Positions 1-58,846 are shown, counted from the first letter of the stretch. The stretch: DNA of 64,000 nt from Utricularia gibba (GCA_002189035.1 NEEC01000011.1:2418001-2482000), one strand, 5' to 3'. Numbers and translations are program-made. The notes: a model not told the origin generated them from the sequence alone.

Positions 1-1490
1 AGCGTAAACACCATTCCCAGAAAATTGGCGCACCCCAGAAGGATCAACGACTTTCTGACTCCGATTCCGGCGGGATATCCGGCGTGCTTCATTGGATCTG
101 GGGACTGAGCGGCGTAAAGAAATCCGAAAGCTCCAACGATGGAACCCGCTTTTCCGGAAGCCGCGGAAATCCCGTGACAGGTGGATCGGAATCTCGCCGG
201 GAAGATCTCCGCCGCGACGACGAAAGTGGTGGCATTTGGTCCGAAATTGGCGAAAAAGAAGGTTAGTGCATAGATGACTAAGAACCCAATTCGGTTATCT
301 TTCTGTGTCCAGTGATCGTACGGTATCGCCAGAGCAAACATAAACGCAGTCATGAAGAAGAAGCCCATTAACTGAATTGTGAAGCGCCCCAATTTTTCGA
401 TGAACCCCATCGTGAACCAGAATCCGGGAAGTGCCAAGAGGGAGACCAGGATCTGGGCTCTGGTGACTTTGAAGACTTCTTCTAAAGCATTCACCGATGA
501 AGGTATTGGGATCCATTTCATGGAGATGAAAATGTCTTTCTGAAACAGAGTTTGGCTGTAAAACGCGATGCCCATAAAAAACCAGGTACTGGTGGTGCCC
601 AGAAGATGACGCCCATGGCGGCGGAGAAATTCCTTGGAAAATAAACCAAATTGGTTTCTTCTTTCGTCTAATTGCGACTCAGTTGTCTCCAGATCCACGT
701 TCAGTACCTTGGACATATCGGCGGCGGCTTGTTTCGCGTTATTGGCGATGAGCGCCGTGTAACGAGCGGTTTCCGGCAATTTTCTCCGTTGGAAGAACGC
801 GGCGGTCGCCGGAACGGCACCGAACATGAGCATCACACGCCACGCGAAGTCGGCTTGAGGGACAGTGGAGCGGATTGGATCAACGGCGTAGGGCGGAGCC
901 GGGAACCCCGCCTTGAACGAGGAGGAGAGAATGAGCCCCACCATTCCTGCGGACATACTTCCGATGCCGCTCATCAAATAAACGGCGGCGAGAAACCTTC
1001 CTCGTGTTCTCTTATTCGCGTACTCCGCCACGATCGTCGCGCAAAGTGGTTGACTTCCACCCACCCCGAACCCCACCCAAAACCTAAAGAAACACAGTGT
1101 AGCCATGACGGACGCAGGCCGGTCGCTGAAAGAAAGCCCTGAACCAACGGGAGAGATGATCATGAACACCAGCGCAATCCCATACGCTTCTTTCCGGCCT
1201 ATTCGATCACCAAGCCACCCGAAAAACAACTGCCCCACCAACGCTCCACATAAAATAACTGCACTGATTGCGGACGACACGTTCGGCGGTAGAGTTCCCG
1301 GCATCGGCGATCCCTCATGGTGGTAATAAATGCGGCCAAGAAGCCTAGTTACCAAGGAAATGGAGAATAGATCGTACGCACCGGCGAGAAACCCGATCCC
1401 GGCGACAATTAACGCCGTGAAATGGAACTTTTGCGTCTTCGCCGAGTCCAGAGCATCCAGCACTTCCACCTTCCGCCCTTCTTCCTCCAT
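1..1490 (-). CDS. PHT1: PHT1-family (phosphate:H+ symporter, MFS) transporter with atypical binding-site residues; 3'-partial, runs off window
   Basis: Hand translation from the ATG at 1490 gives an uninterrupted single-exon frame to base 1: [141 protein letters not shown]. These are hallmark PHT1 motifs. The ORF track omits it because no stop lies inside the window. Confidence 0.95.
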
Positions 1491-2283
1491 TAAAAACCAC
1501 GATCGTTAATAACAGAAGAAGCTCACCCTTCTCCGTACCCATCTATTAATAACAGGGTTACCGCAGTGATAAAGACACTGTACCGGGTCAAAACCCTACC
1601 TCGTTGCGTTGACTTTTTAGAAGAAAAGTGAACCCTCGCCACACGATTGGACAATCAAAAGCCCTAATCTTCCAGATTAATATTAATTACACATGCTTCT
1701 AGAAGGAATCAATGGGAGGGGCGAAACTGGAACAACACAATTAAATGAGACCCCTCTTTTCAAAGCTGTCGAATTTTGAAGTATATCAAGGAATTAAATA
1801 GAATGACCAAAGGCTGAAAGATCTCAGCCGCTGGATCGTGCGAAATCGGACGGCTCAGCGATATTCTCAGCCCAAGAAGAAGCCAAGTCGGTTGTCGTTG
1901 ACTTTTAATTTTTAATATTTTGTTGCGTGGCGTGGTGTCATTGCAATTTGCAAACATAAAAAGTGCACCGCGGCCCACATCGGATATTGAAATAAAAAAA
2001 TGAGTATTATATAATTAAATTGAAGAATATCACATTGAATGGCTATAATTGGACTTAATATAATAATGCCTTACCTAAAATTGAACAATATCATACAAGT
2101 AATATAATAATGCCTTTCCTAAGAGTTTGTCGTGTTGGGAATATTTTTGGAATAAATTATGACAAAGGTGATGATAAGTCACGTTTTTCAAGGCATTCGT
2201 CCAACAAGAACAAACAACATCGGAAGTAGAGGTATTCATTCATTTAATTGCGTAATTTGTTCATTTCAGAAATAATCAATTTC

Positions 2284-3036
2284 TCATAGCTTTGATGGTG
2301 CAACAAGCTCGATCTTCGCTCCCACAAGTGCGCATGCCTCGGGGTACATCGCCGTCCTGATCCCAGCATATGCCGCCCCGCTCCACCGTCTCGCTGCCAG
2401 TTCCTCTGCCTTCTTCACGGCGGCGCTGAGGACCTCCTCCGCGCTACCGTACGCGGAATCAACGATCCCCATCCTCACGGCCTCCTCCGCGCTCACCTTC
2501 GCCGCTCGCAGCAGGACTTCCCGCCTCGCCGCCGCGGATCCGATCTTCGCGCGGATCAGCTCCATGAAATAATCAGGCAGAGTCATGCCCATGTCCAATT
2601 CACTCATATACAGCACCGCTCGAGAGGACGTCATCATGACGTAGTCGTGACACATCGCGAGAATCATCCCCGCGGCGGCAGCGTGACCGGTAACCGCCGC
2701 GACGGTTGGCATAGGGAGGGAGAGAAGATCCGCGACCACTCCTCTGAACAGCTTCACCATCCTTAAAAGTTCCAATCCGGCGGCGTCGGAGGAGCCCGAT
2801 TTAACGCCGACGGCCTGCGCGTGCCTCAGATCGAAGCCGTTGGAGAAGAAACGCCCCTCCGCCACGGTGACCAACGCGGATCCATCGACCGATTGCGATT
2901 TCACCTCGGACAAGGCGGAGCGGATGGCGGCGATCAGATCCGGATGGAGGCGATGCTCCTGATCCTTCTCCGTGTCCCCAATTAGCGTCAGGATGAAGAG
3001 GCGTCCTCGTTTCTCCAACGTGCACATCGCAGACAA
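2284..3036 (-). CDS. ECI: Peroxisomal enoyl-CoA delta isomerase (crotonase fold), single exon
   Basis: MCTLEKRGRLFILTL N-terminus (likely start 3027), FFSNGFDL and AAVTGHAAAAG crotonase motifs, C-terminal SKL (PTS1). Confidence 0.9.
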   Translation of the reverse strand: MSAMCTLEKRGRLFILTLIGDTEKDQEHRLHPDLIAAIRSALSEVKSQSVDGSALVTVAEGRFFSNGFDLRHAQAVGVKSGSSDAAGLELLRMVKLFRGVVADLLSLPMPTVAAVTGHAAAAGMILAMCHDYVMMTSSRAVLYMSELDMGMTLPDYFMELIRAKIGSAAARREVLLRAAKVSAEEAVRMGIVDSAYGSAEEVLSAAVKKAEELAARRWSGAAYAGIRTAMYPEACALVGAKIELVAPSKL

Positions 3037-3210: not shown

Positions 3211-4961
3211 TTATCCACATCCATTCTCGTGGTGTAGAAGAAAGTCATTCAGTTTCTCCCTTCTGTGCTTCATATCAGATATCATCTTCTCAGTTTGACA
3301 GATGATCTGTTGAGGTAAAAACTCCTCCAAGTATCCAATCCACTCACCTAGTGTCATCTTCTCCAAGTCCAACAGGTTTTTCGCCTCCCTTTTGATCTCA
3401 ACACCACCCGAATGTGGCAAAACTTGTTCTTTCCTGGAATCATCCTTTCTGATATCACATGATCTTTCCACTTCTTCGATCATTTGAGTTTCAGCCGTAC
3501 TTCTGTTGGCTGTTTTCAGGATCTTTCTTTGCTGAACACTGTCCAAATCTTTGAAAACTTGCTTCTTTGAGGTCCTACCTCTCCTCCCACCTACCTTTCT
3601 TTCACCCATATGCCTGTGTGTCTCTTCGATCGTGCCATCCATTCCATTTCTTACCGCAGAATAACTTTTTTCATTACTTGCGCTTTTCACCAGATGGGCA
3701 TTTCCATCTTCTGGTATACCTCCTGCTTTTGCAGTTTCGGAGCTCTTTTTTCCCATTTTCAGCTCAACACCATCCACTTGCCTCCTTGAATTCCTCAGAG
3801 TTTGTTTTGTTTCACCCAAATCCCTAACTGCCTCCTCCAGCAAACCATTCTTTCCATTCTTCTCCTCACATCCAGCAACCCCAGCTGCAGGTGTACTTGA
3901 TTTTGCATTTTTCGAGCTCTTGGTCTCCCCTTAAGCTCAACAGCGTCTGAATGTGGCAAATCTTGCTCTTTCTTTGACCTCCTAGTCCTCCTCTGACCCA
4001 GTTTTACTTCACCCAATTCCTTTTTAATCTCCTCCAGTAAACCATCCTCACCATTTTTCATCTCACATTCTGCCCTTTCATCACCTGGTCTTTTCTCCGT
4101 TTCAGTGATCCCAGCTTCCGGCATACTGATTTCCGGTTCTTTTGAGCTGTTGTTTCCCTCCATTTTGATGCCAACACTATCCAAACCTCTTACTGTTTGT
4201 TCTTTCCTTGAACCCCGAGTCCTCCTCTGCTCACCCTGTTTTGTCACATAATTCGTCTCTTCCACCAACCTCTCCCTCCTCCTCGACTTTCCAGTTGCAC
4301 TAATGGTAGCATTCTCAGGAAGCTCGCTTTGGAATTCAGTTTTCTTCAACAGCCTTGTGCTTCTACAACGGCTCAGTGTAATACCCTCCTTTTTCAAAAC
4401 TGTTTCTTCACCAGTATTTCCAGCTTCACAAGCTGTTTTCTCCTCTAGTGTTCCTAACTTAGATCCTGAGAAATTTAACTCAGATTCCTCATGAATGACG
4501 CCTAAATCTATTCCATGACTCCTCACTCTCCGCTTCGGATTCCTGCTCATGTTTCGAGGACACGAATCTCTCCCACCATCTTGCACTCCAAATTTCACGC
4601 CAATCGTCGTCTGCTCACCAATTTCAACGACGTCTCCTTCCGATAAGAGCGCCGGAACCGACGGGCTCAGCTGTCGGCGGTTCAAGGCAGTGCCGTTTGA
4701 AGAACCCAGATCCGTGATTACCCATCCCATACCCCCGAGATCCGACACGTATTCAACTTGAATAACTACATGTTTCGATGAAATTCCGGCATCTTTGATT
4801 GCAACCGTGTTGCCTGTTGCAATACGGCCAATACGAACCTTTTTCCCGGGTTTGAAATCGCGGATTTCCCCGGAAACTGGGCCTTTCTGGAACACGAGGC
4901 GCAGGAAGGGCAACTGGCCGTATTCTCCGGCAACCGCGGCGGCGGACTTCTTCCGAGCCAT
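3211..4961 (-). CDS. FHA-domain protein with repetitive charged linker; one apparent frameshift near 3927-3930
   Basis: N-terminal FHA motifs (VRIGR, GISSKH, DLGSSNGT) and C-terminal EKMTLGEWIGYLE..LPQQI helix typical of plant FHA proteins. The two ORFs join if one G is added to a G4 run. Confidence 0.85.
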
Positions 4962-5154: not shown

Positions 5155-8100
5155 TCATGTAGGCAAAATTCTAAGCAAACGTAGAGCACGCATCCATGGC
5201 GGCCTCTCTGATAACACTATTTTCCTCAGCACAGGTACTGCTCCCGCGGCTACGATGGCGCCATGGTTCTCGCTCTCCATACTCAGGTTATACAAAATCC
5301 CCAAACTCGCTTCAATGCCTCGAATGCTACCTTTCTCCATCATCTCCACAAGGGGGAATATCCCCCCTGGGACGCCACTGCTCTAGTCGAATCGACCAAC
5401 CCTTCCGATATGATTCGATTAAGCTCCAGAACAGCTGTTTCCTTGACATCCATGGGGAATGGACCTTTCAGTAGGTGTATCAGCCTTGGGATCGTCTCGT
5501 AAAGAGTCACCTCCATGTTGACAGGGTTGTCGAGAACGAACTTGTCTCCAGATTCAGAGGTGAGCTTGATCAGGCAAGCAGCGATCATGCTCTTGTTCTC
5601 GAGAGGAATGCTCGATTGGAGGAGAGTCCGGAGCAGTGAGGTAAGGTTTTCGAAGTTCACGGCGCGGCGGAATGGTTCATGGTCGAGCAATTTCATGAGC
5701 AGATGTGAAGCAGCTGAGACTGCTAGGCCAGCTTCCTCCAGCTTCAGGATTCGGATTTCAGGCTTCTCTGTGTCAGCGCCATCATGCTCCAATTCCGCTG
5801 ATTACAGTCAGTGAAAAAAGCCAAGATGCAACCCAAATCAGAAGAGCAAAACAAGAATGGATTAAAGCGAATTCCAGAGCACAGTCATACACAGAATCGC
5901 GGGTCCAGCTTACCTGTTGAACATTTCTGCCGGAAAACCTCTTCCATGGTAGATGCAATCCCTGCAGAAATGAGATTATCGAGTGGAGTTCCAATTGATA
6001 CGATGAACTCAAGTATGGAGGCTGCTCTTCTCTGCAATTCAGGTGTTGATGTCTCCAAGACTTGCACGAGGCAAGAAAGGATACCAGCATCAGTGAAGCT
6101 CTCTGCATGAGGATTATGCAGGCTGCGGAGAAAAACATTCTCATTAGACCTCAAGAGTATCGGTGACCGGAGTTTAAGGAGAAACAGCCTTAGGAAGATC
6201 AACGACAGGTTGGAGTTCAAAATTTTCAGAACTCAACTCTGACAAATACCTTGACGAGGGATCACTTGCAGAAGTCTTTGCCACTGACCCATCAATTTTG
6301 TCTTCATAAAACTGAGTACCGGAAAGATCAGTACAGCGCACCAACCTAAAGACTCAAAGCAGAATACATTGAATGACAAGACAGAAGGAACCTTGTGTTT
6401 CATTTCTTTGTTGGGATCCAAAATCCGCGAAAGAATGCTCAGTATCTGCAGAAAAGCACCAACCATTACTTTCCAACCTGTGGCAATACAGTTACAAAGA
6501 CAATCCAGAGAACAAACAAATACCAGAGGTCTCAAGCTATGCGATGTGCTTGCTGAAGATTGCTTAAGCAAACTTAGAAGAGGCTGCAGTGCTCCTTCTG
6601 CTTCAATTGTCTGGCAAACATTAGTGCTGGATCACAAATCAAATCCACAGATTTAAATTGACGCACAGGGGAGAACTCGACAAAATGAAAAGGGTAAGTG
6701 GTTGATTGCCATAACTTGTATTAAGAAAACGGAATTCATCTCATGTATAGATGTATTAATGCATTGCTACCTGATGGACAGCCTATCTAAAGCTCGAAGG
6801 GTGGCTAATTGTACTTCATGATTTGGGTGGCTAACTAGCAGAACAAGATGTTTGACTGCACCAGCTTCCTTAAAAGAACAACGCATATGCTCATTAACAG
6901 ATGCATCAGATATTGAGTCTGCAGCTCTAGAAATAGCAGATTCATCATTGAGTTGAAGTATTAGAACAAGACGAGCAACAGCATCAATCCATGGTAACAG
7001 TGTTAGCCTCTGAGAAGAAGTGGATGTTCCATCATTCTTATTGCTACTTTCAGCTTCAATTGCACCTATACGAGCAAGGAACTGTTGGTGTGTCCTCCCA
7101 AGTACTGCATTCACTTTTGATTCATCCAAGTCAACATTGTTGTTGCCTATATTCAGACCAAGCAGTAACTCTGAAGCACCATATCTAGAAGCGGTATTCG
7201 GTGTGGATTGCTCTATTTCTGTACCATCCGGTAAAGAGGGCCAGGAGTACAAAGCTGGTCTCAAGGTTTTGTAGGCAGCAGCACCAACCAAAGGAACCAC
7301 AACTAGGCCTTCTTCCATCACAAGTAATCGGTAATAATCATCCTTTGCAAGTTCCAATAATATATTTCTTGCTATTTTTCGAATGACTTTTGCATCCTTT
7401 GAATCCTCCATCAAGATCCTTGACTGCAATAAAATCCAGTAATGCCAAAATTCAGAAATTAACAACACAAGAGTGAGAAAACAGCATGACAATGGTCTTG
7501 TTACCAGTTTTGGGATAACTCCAATTTCAACAATTATTTTGTGGTTTGCAGGGTGCAAAGCAAGGTTAGCCAGGAGCCCTCCAGCCGCTTCTTTGATTTT
7601 CATATCTTCATCATCTAAGCACTTGACAATCAAGGGAAGGATCTCAGATCGAGACACTTGGGCACCAAGCTTTTCATCTACAGCCAAGTTCCATAAAGTA
7701 CATAATGCTTGCTCCTTCACCTGCACCAGATGAAGTTTATCAGTATAGGGATAGCTGACTTCCAAGCCAGCAATCAGCAAATATTCTGTACGTTAGATGA
7801 CACCGCCAAGCGCCCCAGCAGGACAGTGACTGCTTCAATTGCACCACTAGCAGCAACACGCTCTCTGTATGAGTTAATCGAAGATATCACCCGAAGTAGA
7901 CCAGCTGATGCTTCACATGCTGAATCGGAGTCTGACTGCAGAAGGTTAACAATAAGATTGAGAGTGCCACCATATTTCATGATGTTATCAACATACTCTT
8001 TTCCTCCTAATGAATACTTCCATAAAGCAATTACAGCCTGCTCTCTATCCAGACTACTATTATCTAATCCCAGCATCCGAACAAACAACGGCAGGTACGC

Positions 8101-16742: not shown

Positions 16743-19700
16743 CTACCTAAACTTCGGTCTCTTTGGGACAGTGGTGCTGGGACCAGCTCTTGCCTTGCCC
16801 ATGCTCTTCATCTTCCTTCTCCGACGCTCTTCTTCACTGTCGGATTCATCACCCTTCATGCGGTCTGCATTGGTGGCTTCCCTCTCTAGCTCTTCCCATG
16901 TTTTGCCTTCCTCCTCCGCTGAGCCTTCCTCAGAATCATCTTCCTCGTCGTCTTCTGATTCTACCAGGGATTCACTGTCCGAGTCCTCTTCTTCGGAGTC
17001 TGATTCAGGATCAGCATCTGAGGGGGTGTAGCCTTTGTCTGACTCTTCTGAGTTATCTGAATCTGAGTCTGTTGCTTCTAGGTTCAAGAATTCCCAGCCA
17101 CCATCTTCTACAAACTTCTGTGGGTCGTCTGTGATTGTTTTAAGGATGGGGCGCCAGTTGAGATTCAACCTGCTCTCATAGTACTTGATATCTGTGGTAT
17201 CGAGCCATTCCTTGATCCCATCAAGTGAGGAAGATGGGATGGAATCAATCCTAGTGATATCCCGCTTAAAATCCTTGAAGACGATGGCCATATCAAAATT
17301 CTTCTGTCCAAGGCCAACCCTTTCCAGATTGACAATCTCTATTTCACCCAGTGTTATGACCAGGAAAGGTGTTTCTATCAACTCCACCAGGCAGCTTGAT
17401 GTCGGAACTATGAAAGATGAAGTCTTGAACGGCACACCATAGAAGCCAAGTTCTCTCAGTGGCTGGTCAAATTCTAGGTCAAGCCCTTTAAGCTGAGGCT
17501 GCCCCCAGAGATCATTCACCCGGTTTACAAAATGCTGAAAATCCATATTGATTTTGTTCTTGCGGTCTCTCTCTCTTTGCTCCTCTTCAATCTCATCTGG
17601 ATCATATGCAGATCTCTTCCCACCACCAATATTCTGGACCATCTCCATTACTTCAACATAGAATTGTACATCCTTGGTTTTCTTGTTTCCAACCATGATG
17701 TGATTGTGCAAGTGAAAATGGAGGAGGGTGATCATCTCCTTCTCAGCTGGTTGGAAAAATGCATGTTTTATGTTCCCAAACATGATGTCAATTTTTTCTT
17801 CTGATCTTGAGGTAGAATATCGAAAACCATTGGCATGAGCCTCAAGTGCACCAGTCAACTTCCTAGCCCGGCCTCCAAAGGCTGGGCGTATCCACAAGTC
17901 ATGCAGCTTTACAGGCTTAAACTTGTTTCCGGCCAGGACAAGTTTCTCTTGGGTCACCAGAGTTGCCCTTTCAGCCCTTTCAGACTCCCTAGCCATGACA
18001 TTGCGTCTAAGCGTTTTAATCTGCTGCACAACTTCACTTATATGCCTAGGGTCTTTTGAACGGAATGAGACCTCCTTCACATATATAGATCCCAGGTTCT
18101 TCAGAGAAGTTGCATCATGCGGAGTGAAAGGAGTTCCGGGTACATTGAAGATAATACGAATGTAGCAATTGCGATTGGTGTCCTGTTGGCTTGATACTGT
18201 CTTCAAAGTAGACACATGGAAAGGCACCATGCTTCCATAAATTGGAATTAAAATGGCCTCATTCTTGGAGTCTACTTGAATCATCATATCCCGCGGCTGA
18301 GGTACTTCATTGACATTTTTATATGCAATTAATTCATTTGCAGTCTTCAGAGAAGTTCTACCATCACCAGTACCAGAACCAACCCCAGCAAGTCTCCTAA
18401 GAGTTTCTTCATTTTTCTGGCGGGCCAGTTCTGCCTGATGCTGCTTACGGAGCTCTTCCTTTGATATCTCTCCGTCTGACCGCAATGTTGCTTTAGAAAA
18501 TACTGAATCATTCGCACTGGCCACTGGTTTCACAGGAGGCACCTCCTCCTCATCATCATTAAATGTATAAGCAACATCTTTAACAGATTTAGAGCAAGCT
18601 GCGGTCACTACCTCATGGCCATTCTCTGTCACTATAACTGTATCCGCAATCAACAATGAAAAATTCTTACTTTTTGGGTTGGTTGTGTTCGCTTGCAAGT
18701 TTTGAAATCCAAGTAACACATTGAAAACCATTCCCGCTTTTAGCATCCGCTCGTTCTTTGCATTAAGAATCAAACCTGATTCACGAAACTCCAATCCAAT
18801 CCCAGTCCCAGCAGATTTAGTGAGACTAGAAACAAGTTCAGGTGCCTCCTTCGCAACTACTTCAGAAGCTGCCTTATAAACAGTGCTACTCTTATTCCCA
18901 GGTTTCAGAGCCAGAATAGCTGCCTCGTGAGCCTTAAGAAGAACCTCGTAGGCCCTGCTCTGTACTGTGTCAGCATCTATCAGATAAGACCTTCCAATAT
19001 TAGAACAGTAGTTATTGTAGCGAGAACCTATCGCACAAATTATGATACTGCATGAATCATAGTACAATAATTCGTCATTACTTGATGCACTAGGTCTTAA
19101 ATCAAAATCACCACCACTCTGAAATATTGGAGGATAACAGATATCGACATTCTCAGGCTTTAGTCTGACACCAAGCTTAGCAGGATTCAGTATAGCATTC
19201 TCTGTGGCTCCCATCAAAGAAGCATGTGTCACCTTCTTCTCCTCATCAATCACTTTTTCAACTTCTGTTACTACAAAGCTCTTCATAACACACGCAGTTA
19301 GATGAGCAGCTTTTTTAACACACATGATCTCATCTTTGTCCTTCACAGAAAAAAGGTCTGACAAACCATTTGCAATATCACTTAAATGGAGCCCCGAATT
19401 CTTCAACTTTTCTGTCCATATTTCCAATACTTTCCCTTCAGGAACTTCTTTAGCAATATACCCAAAAGTACAAGGACTACTGCTATTCACTTTAGAATGG
19501 ATTCCACTGAGCAGTGAATCAATTTGAGCAGTTCCACTTTCGCCTTTGGCCTTCACATGAATGACAACATCAACATTAATGGTGTCTTTAGCAGTAATCT
19601 TCAAAGGCTCAAGTAATGATGCTATCTTTCTGCTGCACAAGAAGTTAATATTTTTTTCTCCAAACACCATAATCGTCTCAGGATAGTCATGACCAAGGAG

Positions 19701-20708
19701 CCAGATACTTAGAGCAGATGACTTAGGATAACGTAAATCCTCTGAAGGTGGAGGCGTGGCAGCAGAAATATAATCTGAAGAACCCCATAATGCAGCTTTA
19801 TTTTGGTGCCAATGTGAGTATAAGGCCTTCAGTCGTGTGCTGAAAGTGATGAGGTCTACAGCATATGACTTTTCGCTTGACGGTTGACCGCTAGAACCAC
19901 TAACTTTTTCAGGAAATGATGGATTTCCATTTGTAGATTGACCGTTTGGGTTTGACTTTGCAACCGAAGATGGAATCCCTTTTACATGAGTAGCATTTGC
20001 GCTCGTTTTTTCCGTCCTTGGAAGATTTCCGGTTGGTGGTCGGTTTGAGTTTGCTTTCTCAACCTCCACCGCATGTACTCTGCAGAAGATTAAAAAAATA
20101 ACCATTCCAAAACAAATATAGAAGGCAATAAACAAGCATAGCAATTAGATGTCTCACCAAAGGTTGCTGAGCGACTAACAAAAAGAAAATGAAAATACTG
20201 ATGCGCTCAAGTTTAACGAACCTTCAACCCAACTCCCACAAAAAAACTTGAAAATACGAACAGCAGCGCACATGATTTAAAATCAAATGGGCATTCGGAT
20301 TTCGATAAAACATTACTTTCGAATTAAGAAGATGTGCCCAAACACCATATAGCACGCCGTTTTTTAACCAACAACGAACACCATGCCCAGAATTTAAAAA
20401 TAAAAAACAAGGGAAAACCGAATATAAATAAGCAACTATAGACCAAACGCAGTTTGAACCTATGAAACAATAAATAGGAAGTTGTTCTTCAACCTCCAAA
20501 ACCACCACACTCAGAACTCGAAGATACAAAACATAGAAACGAAATTGACATTAGAAAATTTCCAGCAAACGAAAGTTTTAGACGACAACCGGTGCCCCAA
20601 ACATCAAATAGCACGCCATTCTTCAACACCACAAGCACACCACCCAAGAACTTTGAAAAATCAACTAACTGTCCACTCAAGATACCAGAGAAATGCAACT
20701 TACTTCAT
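16743..20708 (-). CDS. SPT16: FACT complex subunit SPT16; proposed join(20704-20708, 16743-20079)
   Basis: Long exon with SPT16 motifs (NVDICYPPIFQSGG, KSAGTGIGLEFRE, HNHIMVGNKKTKDVQFY, acidic C-tail). No in-frame ATG follows the acceptor at 20080; ATG-AA|GTAAGT at 20708 supplies a start in the correct phase. Confidence 0.95.
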
Positions 20709-29362: not shown

Positions 29363-32027
29363 ATGATGGTGGTGGATGCTTCCGGCGCGGCGGTGGGGTC
29401 GCAGAACCAGAAAACTGTCGCCCTACAAGATGATGTTTCGCGGCGACCGCCATTGTTGCCGTCGGAGAGGGATAATAGTAATGGGGTTGCGAATAATCGA
29501 AGGAAACCTAAATCTAGAGTTGTTTCTTCTAGATACATGTCTCCTTCCTCTTCTACATCCACTTCAAATTCATCCTCAGTTTCTTCCTCTTCTTCGTCAT
29601 CCAGAAGGTATCCTTCTCCTTTGATCTCTAGAAGCTCAGCAACGCTGCCCTCCACGGCTTCTCCTCCTGCTAAGAGATCGGTTTCCGTTGACCGCCACAG
29701 GCCTGCGGGTTCAAGGCCACTGACTCCTTATCTTGATTATAAAAGCAGTGGTACCCCTGAGGTTTCAGCTGCAACGAAGCTTTTAGTTACATCTTCTAGG
29801 AGTTTGTCTGTTTCTTTTCAGGGAGAAGCCTTTTCGTTACCTATTAGTAAGACTAAAGTTGCCCCAGCTACACAAAATTTTAGTAGTGCGAGGAAAGGGA
29901 CTCCGGAGAGGCGGAGAACAAGCACGCCTTTGAGAGGTAAGTTGGAAGGAGGAGGTGATCAGGTTGAAAATCTTAAGCTTGCTGATCATCATAGGTGGCC
30001 TGCTAGGGATCGGCTGGTTAATCCGCTGTCCAAAAGCATTAACAATGATGGAAATGATAGGGTTAAGATAATTGGTTCAGGGGATGCAGTCCGAGGATTG
30101 CAGAGGCCAATGCTTGATGAGAGGAGTCCTACGTTTGGTGGTAGGTTGAGTCTTGGTTTTGATTCGTCTGAGCTTTTGAGTGAGTTTCCACCAAGGCCTG
30201 ATAGACATTCAGTCATTGATGGGCTATCCGTCCCTTGCGATTACACTGCATCAGATTCAGATAGTGTTTCGTCTGAAAGTACAACTGGAATTCGTGAACC
30301 TGGTGGTACTTCAATTGCACTAAATGGTCGTCCTAGCATTGCTGTCTCTGCTAGATTTTGGCAAGAGACAAATACCCGGATAAGGAGGCTTCAGGATCCT
30401 GTTTCACCTCTATCTTCTAGTCTAGGATCGAGGATAGTTGCTCCTGCAAAAATGAAAAGGTTTTCAATTGATGGTACAATGTCATCTCCTCGGGCTATGC
30501 TGTCTCCTGTTCGTGGAGTTAATAGAGCTGCATCTCCTAGTAAGGTTCCAGTTGCAGTCGGATCATCTCCCTCCAGGGGACGGATTAGAAATGCAGTTAG
30601 TACCATCTGTAACAATTTTGTTGAAACACCTTCGGTGCTCAGTTTTGCAGTTGATGTTAGAAGGGGTAAAGTCGGGGAGAACAGAATTGTTGATGCACAT
30701 ATGCTAAGACTAATGTATAACCGTCATCTCCAATGGCGCTATGTAAATGCAACAACCGAGTCAGTCTTACTGGTGCAGAAGCACAGTACTGAGGTGACAC
30801 ATGTTTACCTTTTTGGCATTTGAAACTCAAATAGTTGTCCTTATTGTATTATTTTATGCTTGTCCTACACCTGCCATATTTTTATAAAATAGTAAATGTG
30901 TATGGATTTCAAGACATTCTGGCTTCAGAGTCACGTTCAGGACAAGGGCACGAGGGCAGGGTGCTATGCGGCGCCATTGTCAACCATTGATAGTTTTATA
31001 TGATATTTTTCTAAATGAATGCTTCGTTGGTGCCAAAATTATATGTTAAACCATGTTTTGACCCCTGTGTTTTGGTTTATCCAGAAAAGTCTATGGAATG
31101 CATGGATTACTGTCTCGGATCAACGTGATGCTGTCACCAAGAAAAGGCATAAACTGCAGCTGGTGAGGCAAAAGTTGAAACTAGCCTCGATTTTGAAACA
31201 AGAGGTATGCTCTTATCTTATCTTTTGAGTTCAAAACGGTTTTTTTTTTTTTTGGTCTGTAGCTTTGGTTGGCAGAGTCTCTATCTTGTTGTCAATTGTT
31301 CTTTGTTTTCAAGATGTATCTGGGACGATCTGGAATTATGAGAAGCATGTTTTCTAAGGCTTGTCATCATTTTTTGAAGCAGATTTCACTTCTACAAGAT
31401 TGGGCATCTACGGAGAATGACCAATTAGTCTCCTTGAGTGGTGCTATAGAAGCGTTAAAGGCTAGCACGCTTCGTCTTCCTGTGATTGGAGGAGCCTCAG
31501 TATGTTCCTTTCCCTGTTTAAACTGCTAATCCCAAGCCACCTCCTTTTACTTTAACAATCTCTGCAATCGTTTTGATAACAGGCTGATGTCCAAAGCTTG
31601 AAGAATGCTATTGGTTCAGCTGTTGATGTGATGAAGGCCGCGGAGGCTTCAGTTTGCTCCCTTTTGCCAACGGTAATTCTCATTATGTAATCATTCACCG
31701 TTGCATCACATCAGCTGAAGTTTACAAATTTCATTGACATGCTGTCTGGATTTATTTTTTCTTCTGTTTTCCAGGTAGAAGGCGTGAATTCTCTAGTTAC
31801 TGAGCTTGCTAAGCTAACCATTCAGGAGCGGGCTTCCCTCGAACAATGCAAAGATTTACTTTCGTTGTTAGCTGGCATGCAGGTGGAGCTCCTCCTCCTC
31901 CCATCCTCATCTGAATGCTTTCCATATTAAACACCATTTTCAAGTGAATATCACGTTCCACCAGGTTCAAGATGGTAGCCTGAGAACACACATTTTACAG
32001 TGTAGCGGATCATCTTCCACAACGTAG
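29363..32027 (+). CDS. QWRF-motif microtubule-associated protein (QWRF1/SCO3/QWRF2-like), multi-exon
   Basis: VVSSRYMS, SRSLSVSFQGE, ARFWQETN, RLMYNRHLQWRYVNA, ALKASTLRLPV motifs. Confidence 0.9.
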
Positions 32028-34028: not shown

Positions 34029-35357
34029 TCAGGCACAATTCTCACAGCCTGAAGAGAGCTTCTTCTTCTTCCTTCTTTGGACCCAATCGCACACGACGAC
34101 CTTCTCCAGGTTTCCCACGCGCTGACTGAGCGCGTTCAACATGCGAGCCTGCGCTTCATTTCTCTCGCACAACTGCTCCACCATCTTTAGCATCTTCACG
34201 TTCTCCTCCGCCATTCGCTTCAGCAGCAACTCCCTGGCATCGTTGCTTTCTCTTTCCTCCGATGCATCGGGAACGGAGACGTCCCCGGCCTCTGCCGTCG
34301 GGGCTGCTCCTCCTTCCCTGTGCGAGTCGCTAACTTCCCTCGTCTTTGCATCGAGATCTTCCATTGACGATTCATCATGATCAGTTGTATCATCGTTTTC
34401 GCGTATGATGCCAGCGGATCCATTTCCAGTCCCCGGCGTTGTTGCATCCATTGGCGATTCCTGATGATCAATCGCATCCTCTATTATTGACGCTTCATTG
34501 CACGATATAACCGCCGATTCAGGTTCGGTTCCCGGTGCAATCTCATCGTCGGTAACCTCCAAATCCACCGCCGGCGTTGCATCTATTGGCGATTCATGAT
34601 AGTCCTCCACAGCCGCTTCGATGCACGACACACACCCTCGGCCATTTTCAGAAATGGCTGCAGCATGTTCAAGGACGGCTGATCCAAGTTCAATCCCCGG
34701 AGCAACATCACCGCCATTAAACTCCGAGTCCAACGCCACCGTTGCATCTATTGACGATTCATGACGGTCATCCATTGACGTTTCAGTGCACGACATCGGC
34801 TCTTCGGCATTTTCACAAACTGCAGCGCGTGCAACGACGGCGGATGCAGGTTCAGTTCCCTGCAAAGCAATCTCCGAGTCCACCGCAATCTCGCCGCCTT
34901 TAACCTCCGAATCCACTGAAGCCAATGAATCGATCCTCTCCTGCAAAGCAATCGCCTTCCGAATCACAGCCTTCCTCAGAACACGGACGCCGGAATCCAT
35001 TCCGCTAATCGAATCCAGCTTCAGTAGCACAGACATCAGAGTTTCATTCATCCTCACCCTCTCCTTCCAATCCTTCAAATCCATCACCTTAATTCTCTCC
35101 TCAACCGCCTCAATTTCAGATTCCATCTCCCGAATCTTTTTCACACACTTCCTAACCCTAAATCCCCTGTAAACCTTCTGAATCCTCGACGCAAATACCG
35201 ATCTGTCCACTTCCTCCTCCGACCTGACGAAACGCACTGGAATTTGAACAACTTTGGGCGTCGCGTGATGCGTCGGGCGACGATATCGGTAAAAAGGATC
35301 GCTTCCTCCAATCGCCTCCGGCCGCCGTGATGAGTTCTCAAAAAGCCTACCGTCCAT
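34029..35357 (-). CDS. IQ + BAG domain co-chaperone (BAG5/6-like) with acidic repeats and C-terminal coiled coil
   Basis: IQKVYRGFRVRK IQ motif, ETLMSVLLKLDSI..VRVLRKAVIRKAIALQERID BAG domain, single exon. Confidence 0.88.
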   Translation of the reverse strand: MDGRLFENSSRRPEAIGGSDPFYRYRRPTHHATPKVVQIPVRFVRSEEEVDRSVFASRIQKVYRGFRVRKCVKKIREMESEIEAVEERIKVMDLKDWKERVRMNETLMSVLLKLDSISGMDSGVRVLRKAVIRKAIALQERIDSLASVDSEVKGGEIAVDSEIALQGTEPASAVVARAAVCENAEEPMSCTETSMDDRHESSIDATVALDSEFNGGDVAPGIELGSAVLEHAAAISENGRGCVSCIEAAVEDYHESPIDATPAVDLEVTDDEIAPGTEPESAVISCNEASIIEDAIDHQESPMDATTPGTGNGSAGIIRENDDTTDHDESSMEDLDAKTREVSDSHREGGAAPTAEAGDVSVPDASEERESNDARELLLKRMAEENVKMLKMVEQLCERNEAQARMLNALSQRVGNLEKVVVCDWVQRRKKKKLSSGCENCA

Positions 35358-35464
35358 CTTAGCAAAGATACAATGCAAGAGCTGCTCCAAAACGTGGAGA
35401 TATTTCCCGACGGAGTGAATTGCATATCTCGGGGGTATTTAGCGAACAACGCCGAAGGCTGATC

Positions 35465-55370: not shown

Positions 55371-58300
55371 TTATTTCATATCGAGCTTATGAAAAACCTT
55401 CTTCAAAGTGGTCACAGCTTCATCCATCCCAATCCTTTCACGAGGATTCTCTACAGTGCATCTCAAAGCAAGCTCAAGTACACCAGACAAACACTCCAAT
55501 GCTGTCGCAGAAATGGTTTCATCAAGGTCTGCAATCAGCCTAGAGTCGATTATAGAGGCTACTCTCTCAGGAGTTGAATCCCTCACCAGGCTTCTCAATG
55601 ACGAACCGGCAGCAAAGGTCTCATTGCTTGGCTTCATAGCTGTAAACACTTCCATGAGCATTATGCCGTAGCTGTAGACGTCGCAGTTCACAGAGACCAA
55701 TCCTTGAGAGCCATATTCTGAATGAAAGAAAGGAGCTTAGGCCAAGTACATGAAAAAAGGTAAACTTCTGGACACAAGCAGACTCACCAGGTGCAATGTA
55801 GCCTAAGGTTGCAAAAGTATTCGTTTGGGTGAAGCTGATGCTGCCTCCTAATAGCTTTGCGATTCCGAAATCACTCAAGTGTGCAGTCATCTCACAGTCC
55901 AAGAGCACATTGGAGGGCTTTATGTCACAGTGGATGATGGAGGGGAGTTACCATTATGGAGATATTCCAGAGCGCTTGCCACATCAATCATGATGGAGAC
56001 TCTAGTCTTGGTATCCAGGAGATGCTCATCTGAGTAAAGCCATCTCTCAAGGCTACCCTTGGGCATGTACTCCATGACCAGTGCCTTGAATTCTTCATTA
56101 GAGCAAATACCAATGACTTTGCAAAGATTCCGATGGCGAAGGGTCCGGAAAATTTCGCATTCGGTGTCGAAGCTCCTGAACCCTCCTTCCGTCTGTGTGT
56201 TGAAGACCTTGACTGCATAGATCTTGTCTTCGCCAAATTCTCCCTTGTAAACTGATCCGAATCCTCCGGTTCCAAGCAAGTTTTCATCACTGAAACCTGC
56301 AGTTGCTGGAAAAAGATCACGGTATGGAATTCTCATTGGGATTATGCCCACTGGATAATCGTCCTCTGCTTGTGAAGGAACATGGTTCCTTCTGAACTTT
56401 GTGATCACACAGACTGCTAATATCAGAGCCAAGAATAACCCACAAATGACTGGCAGCATGATATATATGTAACCTGTTTTGTGTGGTTTATGAGGTCTAG
56501 CATTTGGACATGGAGGAACATGAAACCGAGGATCGCCACAGAGCCCTGCATTCGACAAAAAAGCGATGTTCGAAAAGTTCTGAAAGGGACCATCAAGTGG
56601 AATCTCACCACTCAAGTTGTTGAAAGATACATCAAAGGATGAAAGCAGCCTGATTTCCTGTAAGGACTTCGGTATGCTGCCTGAAAGACTATTGTGTGAC
56701 AAATCCAATTGTTCCAGGCTCCGAACATCGCCTATGGTTTCTGGGATGTGTCCTTGAAATCTGTTGTGTGATAGAGAAAGATTCACCAGACTTTGCATAT
56801 TTCCAATAGTATCTGGAATACTCCCAGAGAGGTGATTCATTGAAAGATCAAGAATGCTTGCACTCATGAGATTTCCAACAGAGGGAGACAGAGAACCGTT
56901 CAAATAGTTTGTCGATAGATTAAGCTCGAGCAGATTACCAAGCTGCCATAGATTTTCTGGTAGCTCCGACTCCAAGCTGTTATTCTGCATATACAGTTTC
57001 CCAAGCTTACTAGAATTGCTGATGCATGCTGGGATGGCTCCAGTTATTTGATTTCCACCAAGATACATCTCATAACATTTCTGCAGGCCACACACAGCGT
57101 TTGGTAGTGGACCAGTTAGTCTGTTTTGATACAGATATAATCCCTGCAGATTTTGCAAATCCACCAGTGTATTCGGGATTGACCCTGAGAGTTGATTCCG
57201 GCTTAGGCGCAATGACACCAAGCCAGTAAGATTTCCAATCTCAGTCGGAATATCTCCATAGAGATGGCACTCTGAAAGTTGAAGTTCTTGGAGAGTATCC
57301 GAAAGATTGCCCACAGATCTAGGCAATGTTGCAGTAAAAGGATTGCGGTCTAGAATCAAACCTTCTAGATATCTGCATCTTGTCAACTGAGAAATGAAGC
57401 TCAATTCAGTTGAATCATCAACAAAGTTATTCCATTCCAAGTTGAGGAATGTCAAGAATCTAAGATCACCAATGGAGATTGGAACCGTCCCAGACATGAG
57501 ATTATCAGCAAACTCAACAAACCTTAGTTGCGAAGAATTCGAGATAGATTGTGGGAGTTCACCTGTAAACCTGTTGAATGACATGTATATTCCATCAAGG
57601 TTTGGCAAACCACGAAACAAATCAGTTGGGAGATTGCCAGTAAACTCATTTCGCCAACCCGCAAGGGTAGTTAGTGATGATATGTTGAACATCTCATTCG
57701 GAAGCGAACCATGGAACTTGTTATCATCCAGATGAAGAATTCGCAATCTACCAAGGTTTCCAATCTCCCTCGGGATTGTGCCTGCACCCTCAATCACATT
57801 GTTGACATGAATATGAGATTTGATCAAAACATGAAAGTAACTCTAAGGCTGAAGCACAGATGAAAAAAATAGAGACGATTTTGCAGCATGTTCTATGGAA
57901 CACAGCTCAGAGTAGTACCTTCCAGCTGGTTGTGGCCAAGTAATAGCAGCTCAACCTCAGATAAGTTGGTCAGTTCTCTAGGAAAAGGTCCACTGAAACT
58001 GTTGTAAGACAAAGAGGCTATTCGAAGTTTGGAGCATCTAGCAATATTGCGAGGGATTTCTCCTTGGAGCTGATTCTGCGACAAGGCCAACACTTGGAGC
58101 TGTGAGTTACCGGAGCAGATATTGGCCGGAAGTTCCCCTGATAAATTGTTGTAAGTCAGTGCCATGAGCCTTAAGCTGGACACGTTGAGGAGAGTCTCTG
58201 GAATTGGGCCATTCATTTCGTTGTCTTGAAGCGAAAACATCTCGAGTTTGCGAAGATTCCCAATTTCCGCTGGGATTTCTCCTGTTAGATAATTATCTGC

Positions 58301-58846
58301 GAGGCGCAATGTCTCAAGATTGGATGCATTGCCTAGAGAGAGGGGCAAGAAGCCATACAAATCATTAGCCGAAAGAATCAGTAATCGAAGCTTGCCCATG
58401 TTTCCGATCCACGACGGAATCACCCCCCTGAAGCTATTATTCCCCAAATTCAGGGTTTCAAGCATTGATAATCGGGACAATTCCGGGATCAATTCGCCAC
58501 TGAAGTTGTTACTGCTGAGGTCCAGATGTTGAAGAAACGTGAGATTCCCAATTTCAGGAGGCAAATCCCCTGACATCCCCATGCCAGAAAAATTCAAGGA
58601 GATAACTCGGCTATGAATACCACCACAAGTTACCCCAATCCATGCGCAGATGGATGAAGAATCGGACCAATTTGCAGCTGTTTCAGAAGAAACTGCTCTG
58701 GGTTTGAAGGCGGCGACTGCCGATGCGTCTGTTCTGAAGCTCGCTGTCGCGTCTACGCAACAGCAGCTTCCTAGGAACAAAAGTGCCGCTACTAGAAGTG
58801 GAGAAATACAAGAAAACCAGCGAGCAACTGCAGAAGAAGAAGCCAT
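55371..58846 (-). CDS. LRR receptor-like kinase, subfamily XII-like, non-RD; apparent frameshift at 55939-55945
   Basis: Signal peptide, LRRNT (CAWIGVTC), more than 20 plant LRRs, [25 protein letters not shown] after a one-base correction, DFGIAK; introns near 57782-57917 and in the kinase. Confidence 0.92.

Follow-up and report, generated by a model that had tools for sequence, protein, structure and literature searches.

A transcribed plant PHT1 paralogue under purifying selection with replaced phosphate-binding and proton-relay residues, a candidate for a non-canonical transport or sensing role

Can a plant PHT1 phosphate:H+ symporter gene lose several of its phosphate (Pi)-binding and proton-relay residues and still be maintained, and if so, what would its product do? 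In descriptions of plant PHT1 transporters these residues are fully conserved, and current transport models and crop-engineering ideas build on them. In the window, by which we mean the whole stretch of 64,000 nt of DNA that was analysed, a PHT1 paralogue is present in which five such residues are replaced, yet which is expressed and under purifying selection. The gene represents a natural experiment on coupling versus substrate-binding residues and may stand for a transport or sensing activity that is new in plant phosphate handling.

Translation of the minus strand from an ATG at 1488-1490 gave an open reading frame of 496 codons without a stop, which exits the window at its left edge with approximately 42 codons lying beyond it:

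1..1490, minus strand: coding sequence of the diverged PHT1 paralogue, codons 1-496 (open frame, Pfam, TIGR00887, colinear RNA contigs)

RNA contigs were colinear with the genome across the gene and contained no joints, and the covered part is therefore intronless; these contigs continue for 194 nt beyond the window edge. The PHT1 gene of Genlisea aurea (KE528376.1, L001 1742-1810) is interrupted by a 69-nt intron directly behind the PETAR codons, a point at which the window gene is continuous. The product matched the Pfam families Sugar_tr (PF00083, 2.2e-45) and MFS_1 (PF07690, 3.2e-24), and its best solved relative in a phmmer search was rice OsPHT1;11 (9kmq, E = 1.8e-158), followed by fungal PiPT. 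An AlphaFold2 model calculated from an alignment of 58 sequences (pTM 0.78, mean pLDDT 76) contained twelve transmembrane helices (TM), and the top Foldseek matches of this model were 9kmq, 9kou, and PiPT, with a TM-score of 0.89 to OsPHT1;11, normalised to the target. By its 12-TM fold, its profile matches, and its nearest solved structures, the protein thus belongs to the PHS/PHT1 family of the major facilitator superfamily (MFS), and a protein-atlas look-up returned only H+/Pi cotransporter clusters. The score against TIGR00887, the NCBIfam equivalog model for phosphate:H+ symporters, was 566.7 bits and fell below the cut-off of 610.3 bits. As four canonical relatives, shortened to the same C-terminal end, scored between 729.5 and 754.7 bits, this shortfall is due to divergence rather than to truncation.

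Residue correspondences were obtained from HMMER alignments to solved structures, and residue roles were taken from the cryo-EM study of OsPT11 (bioRxiv 10.1101/2025.08.04.668567). The positions listed here were assigned by alignment, in the case of S146/Q147 together with an RNA contig (X3) and in the case of R136 together with PMC6761603:

1380..1382, minus strand: G37, replacing the TM1 proton-relay Asp (PiPT D45, OsPT11 D39, AtPHT1;1 D35)
1371..1373, minus strand: D40, the kept TM1 Asp that pairs with R136 (equivalent to PiPT D48, OsPT11 D42, AtPHT1;1 D38)
1083..1085, minus strand: R136, the kept TM4 Arg (AtPHT1;1 R134), partner of D40
1050..1055, minus strand: S146/Q147, replacing the TM4 Asp-Tyr pair (PiPT D149/Y150, OsPT11 D150/Y151)
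969..980, minus strand: TM5 residues Y171-L172-M173-S174; S174 (codon 969-971) replaces the Pi-binding Gln (OsPT11 Q178, PiPT Q177) and Y171 replaces the gate Phe F175
558..584, minus strand: TM7 residues W303...G307...Y311; the Pi ligands Trp and Tyr are kept and G307 (codon 570-572) replaces the Pi- and proton-binding Asp (PiPT D324, OsPT11 D314, Pho84 D358)
234..236, minus strand: N419, a kept Pi ligand (OsPT11 N425, AtPHT1;1 N421)
150..152, minus strand: K447, the kept Pi-binding Lys (OsPT11 K453, AtPHT1;1 K449)

In comparison to canonical plant PHT1 proteins (OsPHT1;11, 9kmq/9kou; AtPHT1;1), D39, D150, Y151, Q178, and D314 are changed to G, S, Q, S, and G, respectively, whereas the GKAG motif and the equivalents of W310, Y318, N425, K453, D42, and R134 are kept. 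The Pi-coordinating set of OsPT11 (Q178/W310/D314/N425/K453) has lost two of its five members, which are S174 and G307 in the paralogue, and retains W303, N419, and K447. Two of the three proton-relay acids D39/D42/D150 are replaced (G37, S146) and one is kept (D40), and both gate aromatics are altered (Y151 to Q147, F175 to Y171). The buried charges, which in canonical proteins comprise D37, D40, D146, and D307 besides R136 and K447, are reduced to D40 along with R136 and K447. The MFS motif A and the charged cytoplasmic residues D214/R218/R235 are also kept. The initial annotation, which was made from the DNA alone, had described about 496 open codons without frameshift, and translation bore this out; the motifs and codon coordinates that it quoted for G37, S146/Q147, S174, and G307 were all present and correct. 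The HMMER alignment confirmed the equivalence that it had drawn between the altered sites and PiPT D45, D149/Y150, Q177, and D324, and its proposal that the counterparts of W320, Y328, N431, K459, and D48 are kept holds for W303, Y311, N419, K447, and D40.

How unusual these replacements are was evident at three levels of comparison. All of the best 120 database matches (120/120) carried GFFTDAYDLF, GGDYPLSATI, AAVFAMQG, and WFLLDIAFY or near-identical forms. In a comparison of 112 sequences, the consensus residue at the altered pocket, relay, and gate positions was conserved to 99-100%, and the position of G37 was occupied by Asp in 100% of the 112 relatives. For a family-wide survey, 1.84 billion cluster representatives (clusters at 50% identity) were searched exhaustively with HMMER, and 67 representatives spanned all twelve key positions, with identities down to about 32%. 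The D314 position was Asp in 66 of these 67 and the Gln was likewise kept in 66; none of the 67 lacked all three acids, and the G/SQ/S/G residue pattern was seen a single time, in the query itself. The pocket changes are far beyond chance.

DNA contigs (X1) and RNA contigs (X3, X4) showed no difference from the window across all altered codons, and the X3 contig, which spans 1-1059 and includes S146/Q147, was likewise free of differences. G37, S174, and G307 are also present in X7, a divergent accession that carries the same species label; as the X7 contig stops at 1051, it covers S146/Q147 in part. With X1, X3, and X4 exact over the altered codons and G37, S174, and G307 kept in X7, we rejected a sequencing or assembly artefact, to which we assign practically no probability. 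The view that assembly errors are unlikely was thus borne out by identical codons in contigs from independent DNA and RNA runs.

The RNA contigs (X3, X4, X7) were restricted to the gene body, from 1 to about 1500, and resumed in the neighbouring gene from about 2140. They were absent from the intergenic DNA at about 1541-2135, whereas the DNA run crosses the ATG into the intergenic DNA, and the RNA contigs therefore represent transcripts and not contaminating DNA. The gene was present in five RNA runs of one organism (organism A) from three studies, and one older run of unclear type, labelled as a second organism (organism B), carried near-identical pieces of it. Expression of the gene is thus supported by RNA contigs from three studies. 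For Utricularia gibba, three Pht1 genes were reported to be preferentially expressed in traps (PMC3141634). The region preceding the coding sequence was delimited by contig ends, and its promoter and transcription start are putative:

1491..2160, minus strand: short 5′ untranslated region, with RNA contigs ending at 1496-1510, followed upstream by the putative intergenic promoter

The sequence TTATTAATA at 1544-1552, about 35-40 nt upstream of the contig ends, is TATA-like and may mark the promoter that sets the transcription start. P1BS sites (GNATATNC) were absent from 1491-2160 (~670 bp upstream), and their window-wide count was at chance level. An upstream ATG at 1540-1542 opens an out-of-frame ORF of 65 codons (window 1345-1542, minus strand) that overlaps the start of the PHT1 coding sequence; as the RNA contigs end at 1496-1510, transcription may start downstream of it, in which case it would be no genuine uORF. 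Within 2207-2259, at the 3′ end of the neighbouring gene, the X7 accession has an additional GGC triplet after 2209 as well as two substitutions, which fits an accession-level divergence of about 1-2%.

Selection was assessed on two time scales. Between the reference and X7, 23 sites differed in the covered coding sequence, 15 of them synonymous (in 14 codons) and eight non-synonymous (K21R, I79V, V115I, L188V, E268Q, N334D, I401V, and A474P, mostly conservative). With 343 synonymous and 1085 non-synonymous sites, this corresponds to a pN/pS of ~0.17, and the binomial probability of eight or fewer non-synonymous differences among 23 under neutrality was 3e-5. For the long term we used our own implementation of a GY94/F3x4 maximum-likelihood branch model with the coding sequences of the query and six canonical relatives (Genlisea, Sesamum, Paulownia, Olea, Andrographis, and Ipomoea). 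The omega value was 0.18 on the query branch and 0.030 in the background, an approximately 6-fold difference; the one-ratio model was rejected with p = 5e-7 and omega = 1 on the query branch with p = 3e-6. An alternative topology yielded a query-branch omega of 0.14 and rejected omega = 1 with p = 3e-8. Compared to its Genlisea sister, the query branch had a dS of 0.96 versus 1.18 and a five times higher dN (0.173 versus 0.035); as dS is near 1 on these branches, the long-term omega is approximate. The agreement of the recent (0.17) and the long-term (0.18) estimates indicates a stable level of constraint that is looser but real. A young pseudogene was rejected, since recent and long-term constraint agree, omega = 1 is rejected, and the gene is transcribed; the frame is open over the 496 codons read and omega is not near 1. 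Expression and purifying selection thus support the earlier proposal of neofunctionalisation rather than decay.

The divergence is not confined to the pocket. Of 227 invariant columns, 33 carry a different residue in the paralogue, and so do 56 of the 296 columns with a conservation of 98% or more; its relatives deviate at a median of one and a maximum of eight. In a tree of 113 proteins, the terminal branch of the query measured 1.53 substitutions per site compared to a median of 0.09, i.e., about 17 times more. The changes are distributed unevenly along the protein: 53 of 208 conserved columns were altered in residues 19-367 (TM1-8), but only 3 of 81 in residues 368-496 (Fisher p = 5e-6), which form a near-canonical block defined by this column comparison:

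3..389, minus strand: residues 368-496 (TM9-TM12), near-canonical block, 3 of 81 conserved columns altered

In line with this, the query-branch omega was 0.23 for residues 1-367 and 0.07 for residues 368-496, the latter value being indicative, as it is based on 129 codons (test of omega = 1, p = 0.08). A contrast between cavity-lining and outer helices was rejected, as the altered conserved columns were not significantly enriched in the former over the latter (p = 0.44); the real contrast is that between residues 19-367 and TM9-12. TM1, 4, 5, and 8 are heavily altered, and TM1, 3, 4, and 6, which line the proton tunnel of OsPT11 (bioRxiv 10.1101/2025.08.04.668567), are among the most altered helices. 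The initial annotation had spoken of five substitutions in an otherwise intact protein, which was overstated in view of the 33 changed invariant columns, the roughly 17-fold branch length, and the fast-evolving N-terminal three quarters. Its interpretation as a whole therefore stands with respect to a maintained gene that is neither decaying nor an artefact, but not with respect to targeted changes in an otherwise normal protein.

We searched for orthologues in a collection of 5.8 billion proteins with the full-length sequence and with residues 141-496 as queries. No orthologue with more than 70% identity was present in this collection, every match was canonical, and the orthologous clade sharing G/SQ/S/G that the initial annotation had suggested looking for was not found there. 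The best single-domain match was the protein of Genlisea aurea (70%), followed by those of other Lamiales, which points to a member of the Lentibulariaceae as the probable source. In small trees the query and the Genlisea gene formed one group, modestly supported at 66-80. The run labelled as organism B contained near-identical pieces of the same gene; otherwise, the runs of organisms B, C, and D contained pieces of canonical paralogues, and the runs of C and D held no clear orthologue when contigs were compared at 80% likeness. As no orthologue sharing the changes was found in another species, conservation of the altered pocket is shown within one species complex only. Loose ends of contigs of canonical paralogues read TTTWFLLD and TSTWFLLDIA. 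The closest relative was one of these canonical paralogues, a contig from organism B (X10) whose loose end encodes TTTWFLLD; over window positions 1-391 it shared 83.6% nucleotide identity with the window gene, compared to 76.7% for Genlisea. Because the canonical paralogue is nearer than Genlisea, the window gene most likely arose by a duplication within the source lineage after the split from Genlisea, with this copy alone being accelerated. The canonical X10 paralogue, which is the likely duplication partner, is expressed in a species identical or nearly identical to that of the window gene.

These data bear on the possibility that the gene is a redundant duplicate under relaxed selection that is transcribed and weakly constrained, has no new role, and is heading for loss. 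The six-fold raised omega, the terminal branch of 17 times the median length, the lack of an orthologue in the 5.8-billion-protein collection, the score below the TIGR00887 cut-off, and the expression of a canonical paralogue in the same species would all fit such a copy. However, omega = 1 was rejected both on the long branch and in the recent divergence, 496 codons have stayed open despite a branch dS of about 1, and the conservation of TM9-12 is near that of canonical genes. As the recent omega of 0.17 is not above the long-term value of 0.18, there is no sign of an ongoing release from selection. We therefore regard a redundant copy as improbable and consider it very probable that the paralogue is functional but non-canonical. 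As judged from its sequence, it probably does a different transport or sensing job than phosphate/proton import.

Published mutagenesis of homologues indicates which functions may have been lost. In OsPT11, the exchanges D39N, D42N, D150N, Q178A, and D314A/N impaired transport (bioRxiv 10.1101/2025.08.04.668567). In the case of AtPHT1;1, the D35A and D144A variants were inactive and did not restore the Pi level of the pht1;1 mutant, the Y145A, F169A, Q172A, and D308A variants retained partial activity, and the exchanges Y312A, N421A, and K449A abolished activity (PMC6761603). The latter three residues correspond to Y311, N419, and K447 of the paralogue, all of which are kept. In yeast Pho84, D358 was shown to be crucial for transport but not for signalling, and at Tyr179 Ser or Phe was tolerated, whereas Ala or Gly was not (PMC5159500). 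Some of these results would be compatible with a protein that still acts as a phosphate:H+ symporter via alternative residues: AtPHT1;1 D308A is partly active, Pho84 Y179S behaves like the wild type, and D40, R136, and K447 are kept. On the other hand, D35A and D144A each inactivate AtPHT1;1 and D39N and D150N each impair OsPT11, and in the paralogue the equivalents of D39 and D150 are lost jointly with those of D314 and Q178; none of the 67 representatives lacks all three acids. We consider retained symport to be very unlikely, and the same mutants suggest that H+ coupling has been lost.

Since the residues of the proton relay and of protonation-gated binding are lost and those essential for activity are kept, the pattern favours, among the roles first proposed, a proton-uncoupled facilitator, i.e., an alternating-access carrier of phosphate or a similar oxyanion that is uncoupled from protons. 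We put this reading forward tentatively, at somewhat less than an even chance. On this reading, a plant PHT1 phosphate:H+ symporter gene was duplicated within one lineage, and the copy, which is transcribed and under purifying selection, would be unable to carry out the canonical proton-coupled cycle. Three of the four membrane-buried acids (the TM1 relay, the TM4 relay, and the Pi- and proton-binding Asp of TM7) are missing, as are the neighbouring Tyr and the Gln of TM5. The half of the oxyanion site that belongs to the C-domain (W303, Y311, N419, K447) could still bind phosphate or a similar oxyanion, and retained binding and transport are suggested by these residues. The pocket would now be more positive, and the D40-R136 pair, motif A, and the TM9-12 block might keep alternating access going, so that the oxyanion would be moved without proton coupling, as by a facilitator or uniporter, e.g., in efflux or equilibration.

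The route from coupled to uncoupled transport would be the same as that separating the H+ symporter XylE from the uniporter GLUT1. In these proteins, the presence or absence of a buried acid in TM1 (D27 versus N29) determines whether the same fold operates with proton coupling, and the parallel of XylE D27/R133 and GLUT1 N29/R126 was drawn in the mutagenesis study of AtPHT1;1 (PMC6761603). XylE and GLUT1 belong to another MFS family and have another substrate, so that the comparison is a mechanistic analogy and not functional homology. Several points speak against the uncoupled carrier. A role of lesser importance would also be compatible with the query omega at six times the background, and the replacement by G307 may reduce Pi binding itself in addition to uncoupling it, because D314 in its protonated form is thought to be needed for Pi binding. 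Moreover, the altered columns are not significantly enriched in the cavity-lining helices, and no orthologue sharing the changes was found in another species.

The main rival is a non-transporting protein, either a transceptor-like sensor or a partner that forms hetero-oligomers with canonical PHT1 proteins and modulates them. Pho84 mutants altered at D358, the counterpart of G307, show that the same fold without this Asp loses transport and can largely keep signalling (PMC5159500); those mutants are engineered single-site variants, whereas the paralogue is natural and has several pocket changes. PiPT and Pho84 belong to the same family and provided the residue framework by which the pocket was defined, at ~29% identity to the paralogue. 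A second case is rice PT13, a PHT1 paralogue which, in the passage of PMC8644718 that cites Yang et al. 2012, is proposed to be a non-transporting sensor in mycorrhizal roots, a role other than uptake. PT13 differs from the window gene in being grass-specific and mycorrhiza-induced, and the two are compared here by description. The Pi-recognising residues were stated to be 100% conserved in the plant PHT1s aligned in the OsPT11 study (bioRxiv 10.1101/2025.08.04.668567), and the PT13 case, as far as it is described in these sources, is therefore not reported to rest on a rebuilt pocket. The OsPT11 structure was solved with two chains, and expression and purifying selection are equally compatible with a sensor or regulator. 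Against such a role, motif A, D40-R136, D214/R218/R235, and the C-domain ligands are strictly conserved, a pattern more readily accounted for by a protein that still cycles; the position of Pho84 Tyr179, which matters for signalling (PMC5159500), is Gln in the paralogue; and there is no established plant PHT1 signalling pathway to compare with. We consider a sensor or regulatory subunit possible but unlikely.

The changes in the N-domain might instead have reset the specificity of the paralogue, so that it carries a different substrate; an organophosphate, an anion other than phosphate, or a solute without charge would be examples. Such a change would fit the radical alteration of five pocket positions and the heavy alteration of TM1, 4, 5, and 8, and it has a counterpart in the PHS family: yeast Git1 is a glycerophosphodiester permease whose main substrate is not free Pi, although it belongs to a distant fungal clade and is likened to the paralogue by description. 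However, the ligands of the Pi oxygens (W303, Y311, N419, K447) are unchanged, suggesting that the protein still binds a phosphate-like group, and no sequence feature indicates a specific alternative. A changed substrate therefore appears rather unlikely, and, like a weakly constrained redundant copy and retained symport, it is less likely than an uncoupled carrier or a sensor.

Taken against canonical plant PHT1 proteins, the paralogue shares the 12-TM MFS fold and an identity of 66-70% to Lamiales PHT1;4-like proteins, but differs by its 33 changed invariant columns, its 6-fold omega, its score below the TIGR00887 cut-off, and the absence of P1BS from the 670 bp upstream. Whether it is a natural, PHT1-derived, H+-independent carrier of phosphate, a similar oxyanion, or a new substrate, which arose by duplication in one fast-evolving Lamiales lineage, probably of carnivorous Lentibulariaceae, we rate as a serious possibility that falls a little short of an even chance; if true, it would be the first natural example of a PHT1 scaffold that was re-coupled or re-specified. 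Being one gene in one species complex and judged by its sequence, the case is a good lead rather than already a discovery.

The gene density around the paralogue is very high for a plant genome. Minus-strand ORFs packed beside it encode an enoyl-CoA hydratase-like protein (2284-3036), an FHA-domain protein (3795-4961), and an armadillo-repeat protein (6767-7780). Further into the window, an uninterrupted and apparently intronless ORF of 1133 codons (16743-20144, minus strand) encodes the complete FACT subunit SPT16 with its N-lobe, M24-like, middle, PH-like, and C-terminal domains. A QWRF-family ORF (29363-30823, plus strand) and a BAG-domain ORF (34029-35390, minus strand) follow, and an LRR receptor-like kinase (55920-58846, minus strand) occupies two neighbouring ORFs, presumably separated by an intron or by a break in the frame between 57827 and 57893.
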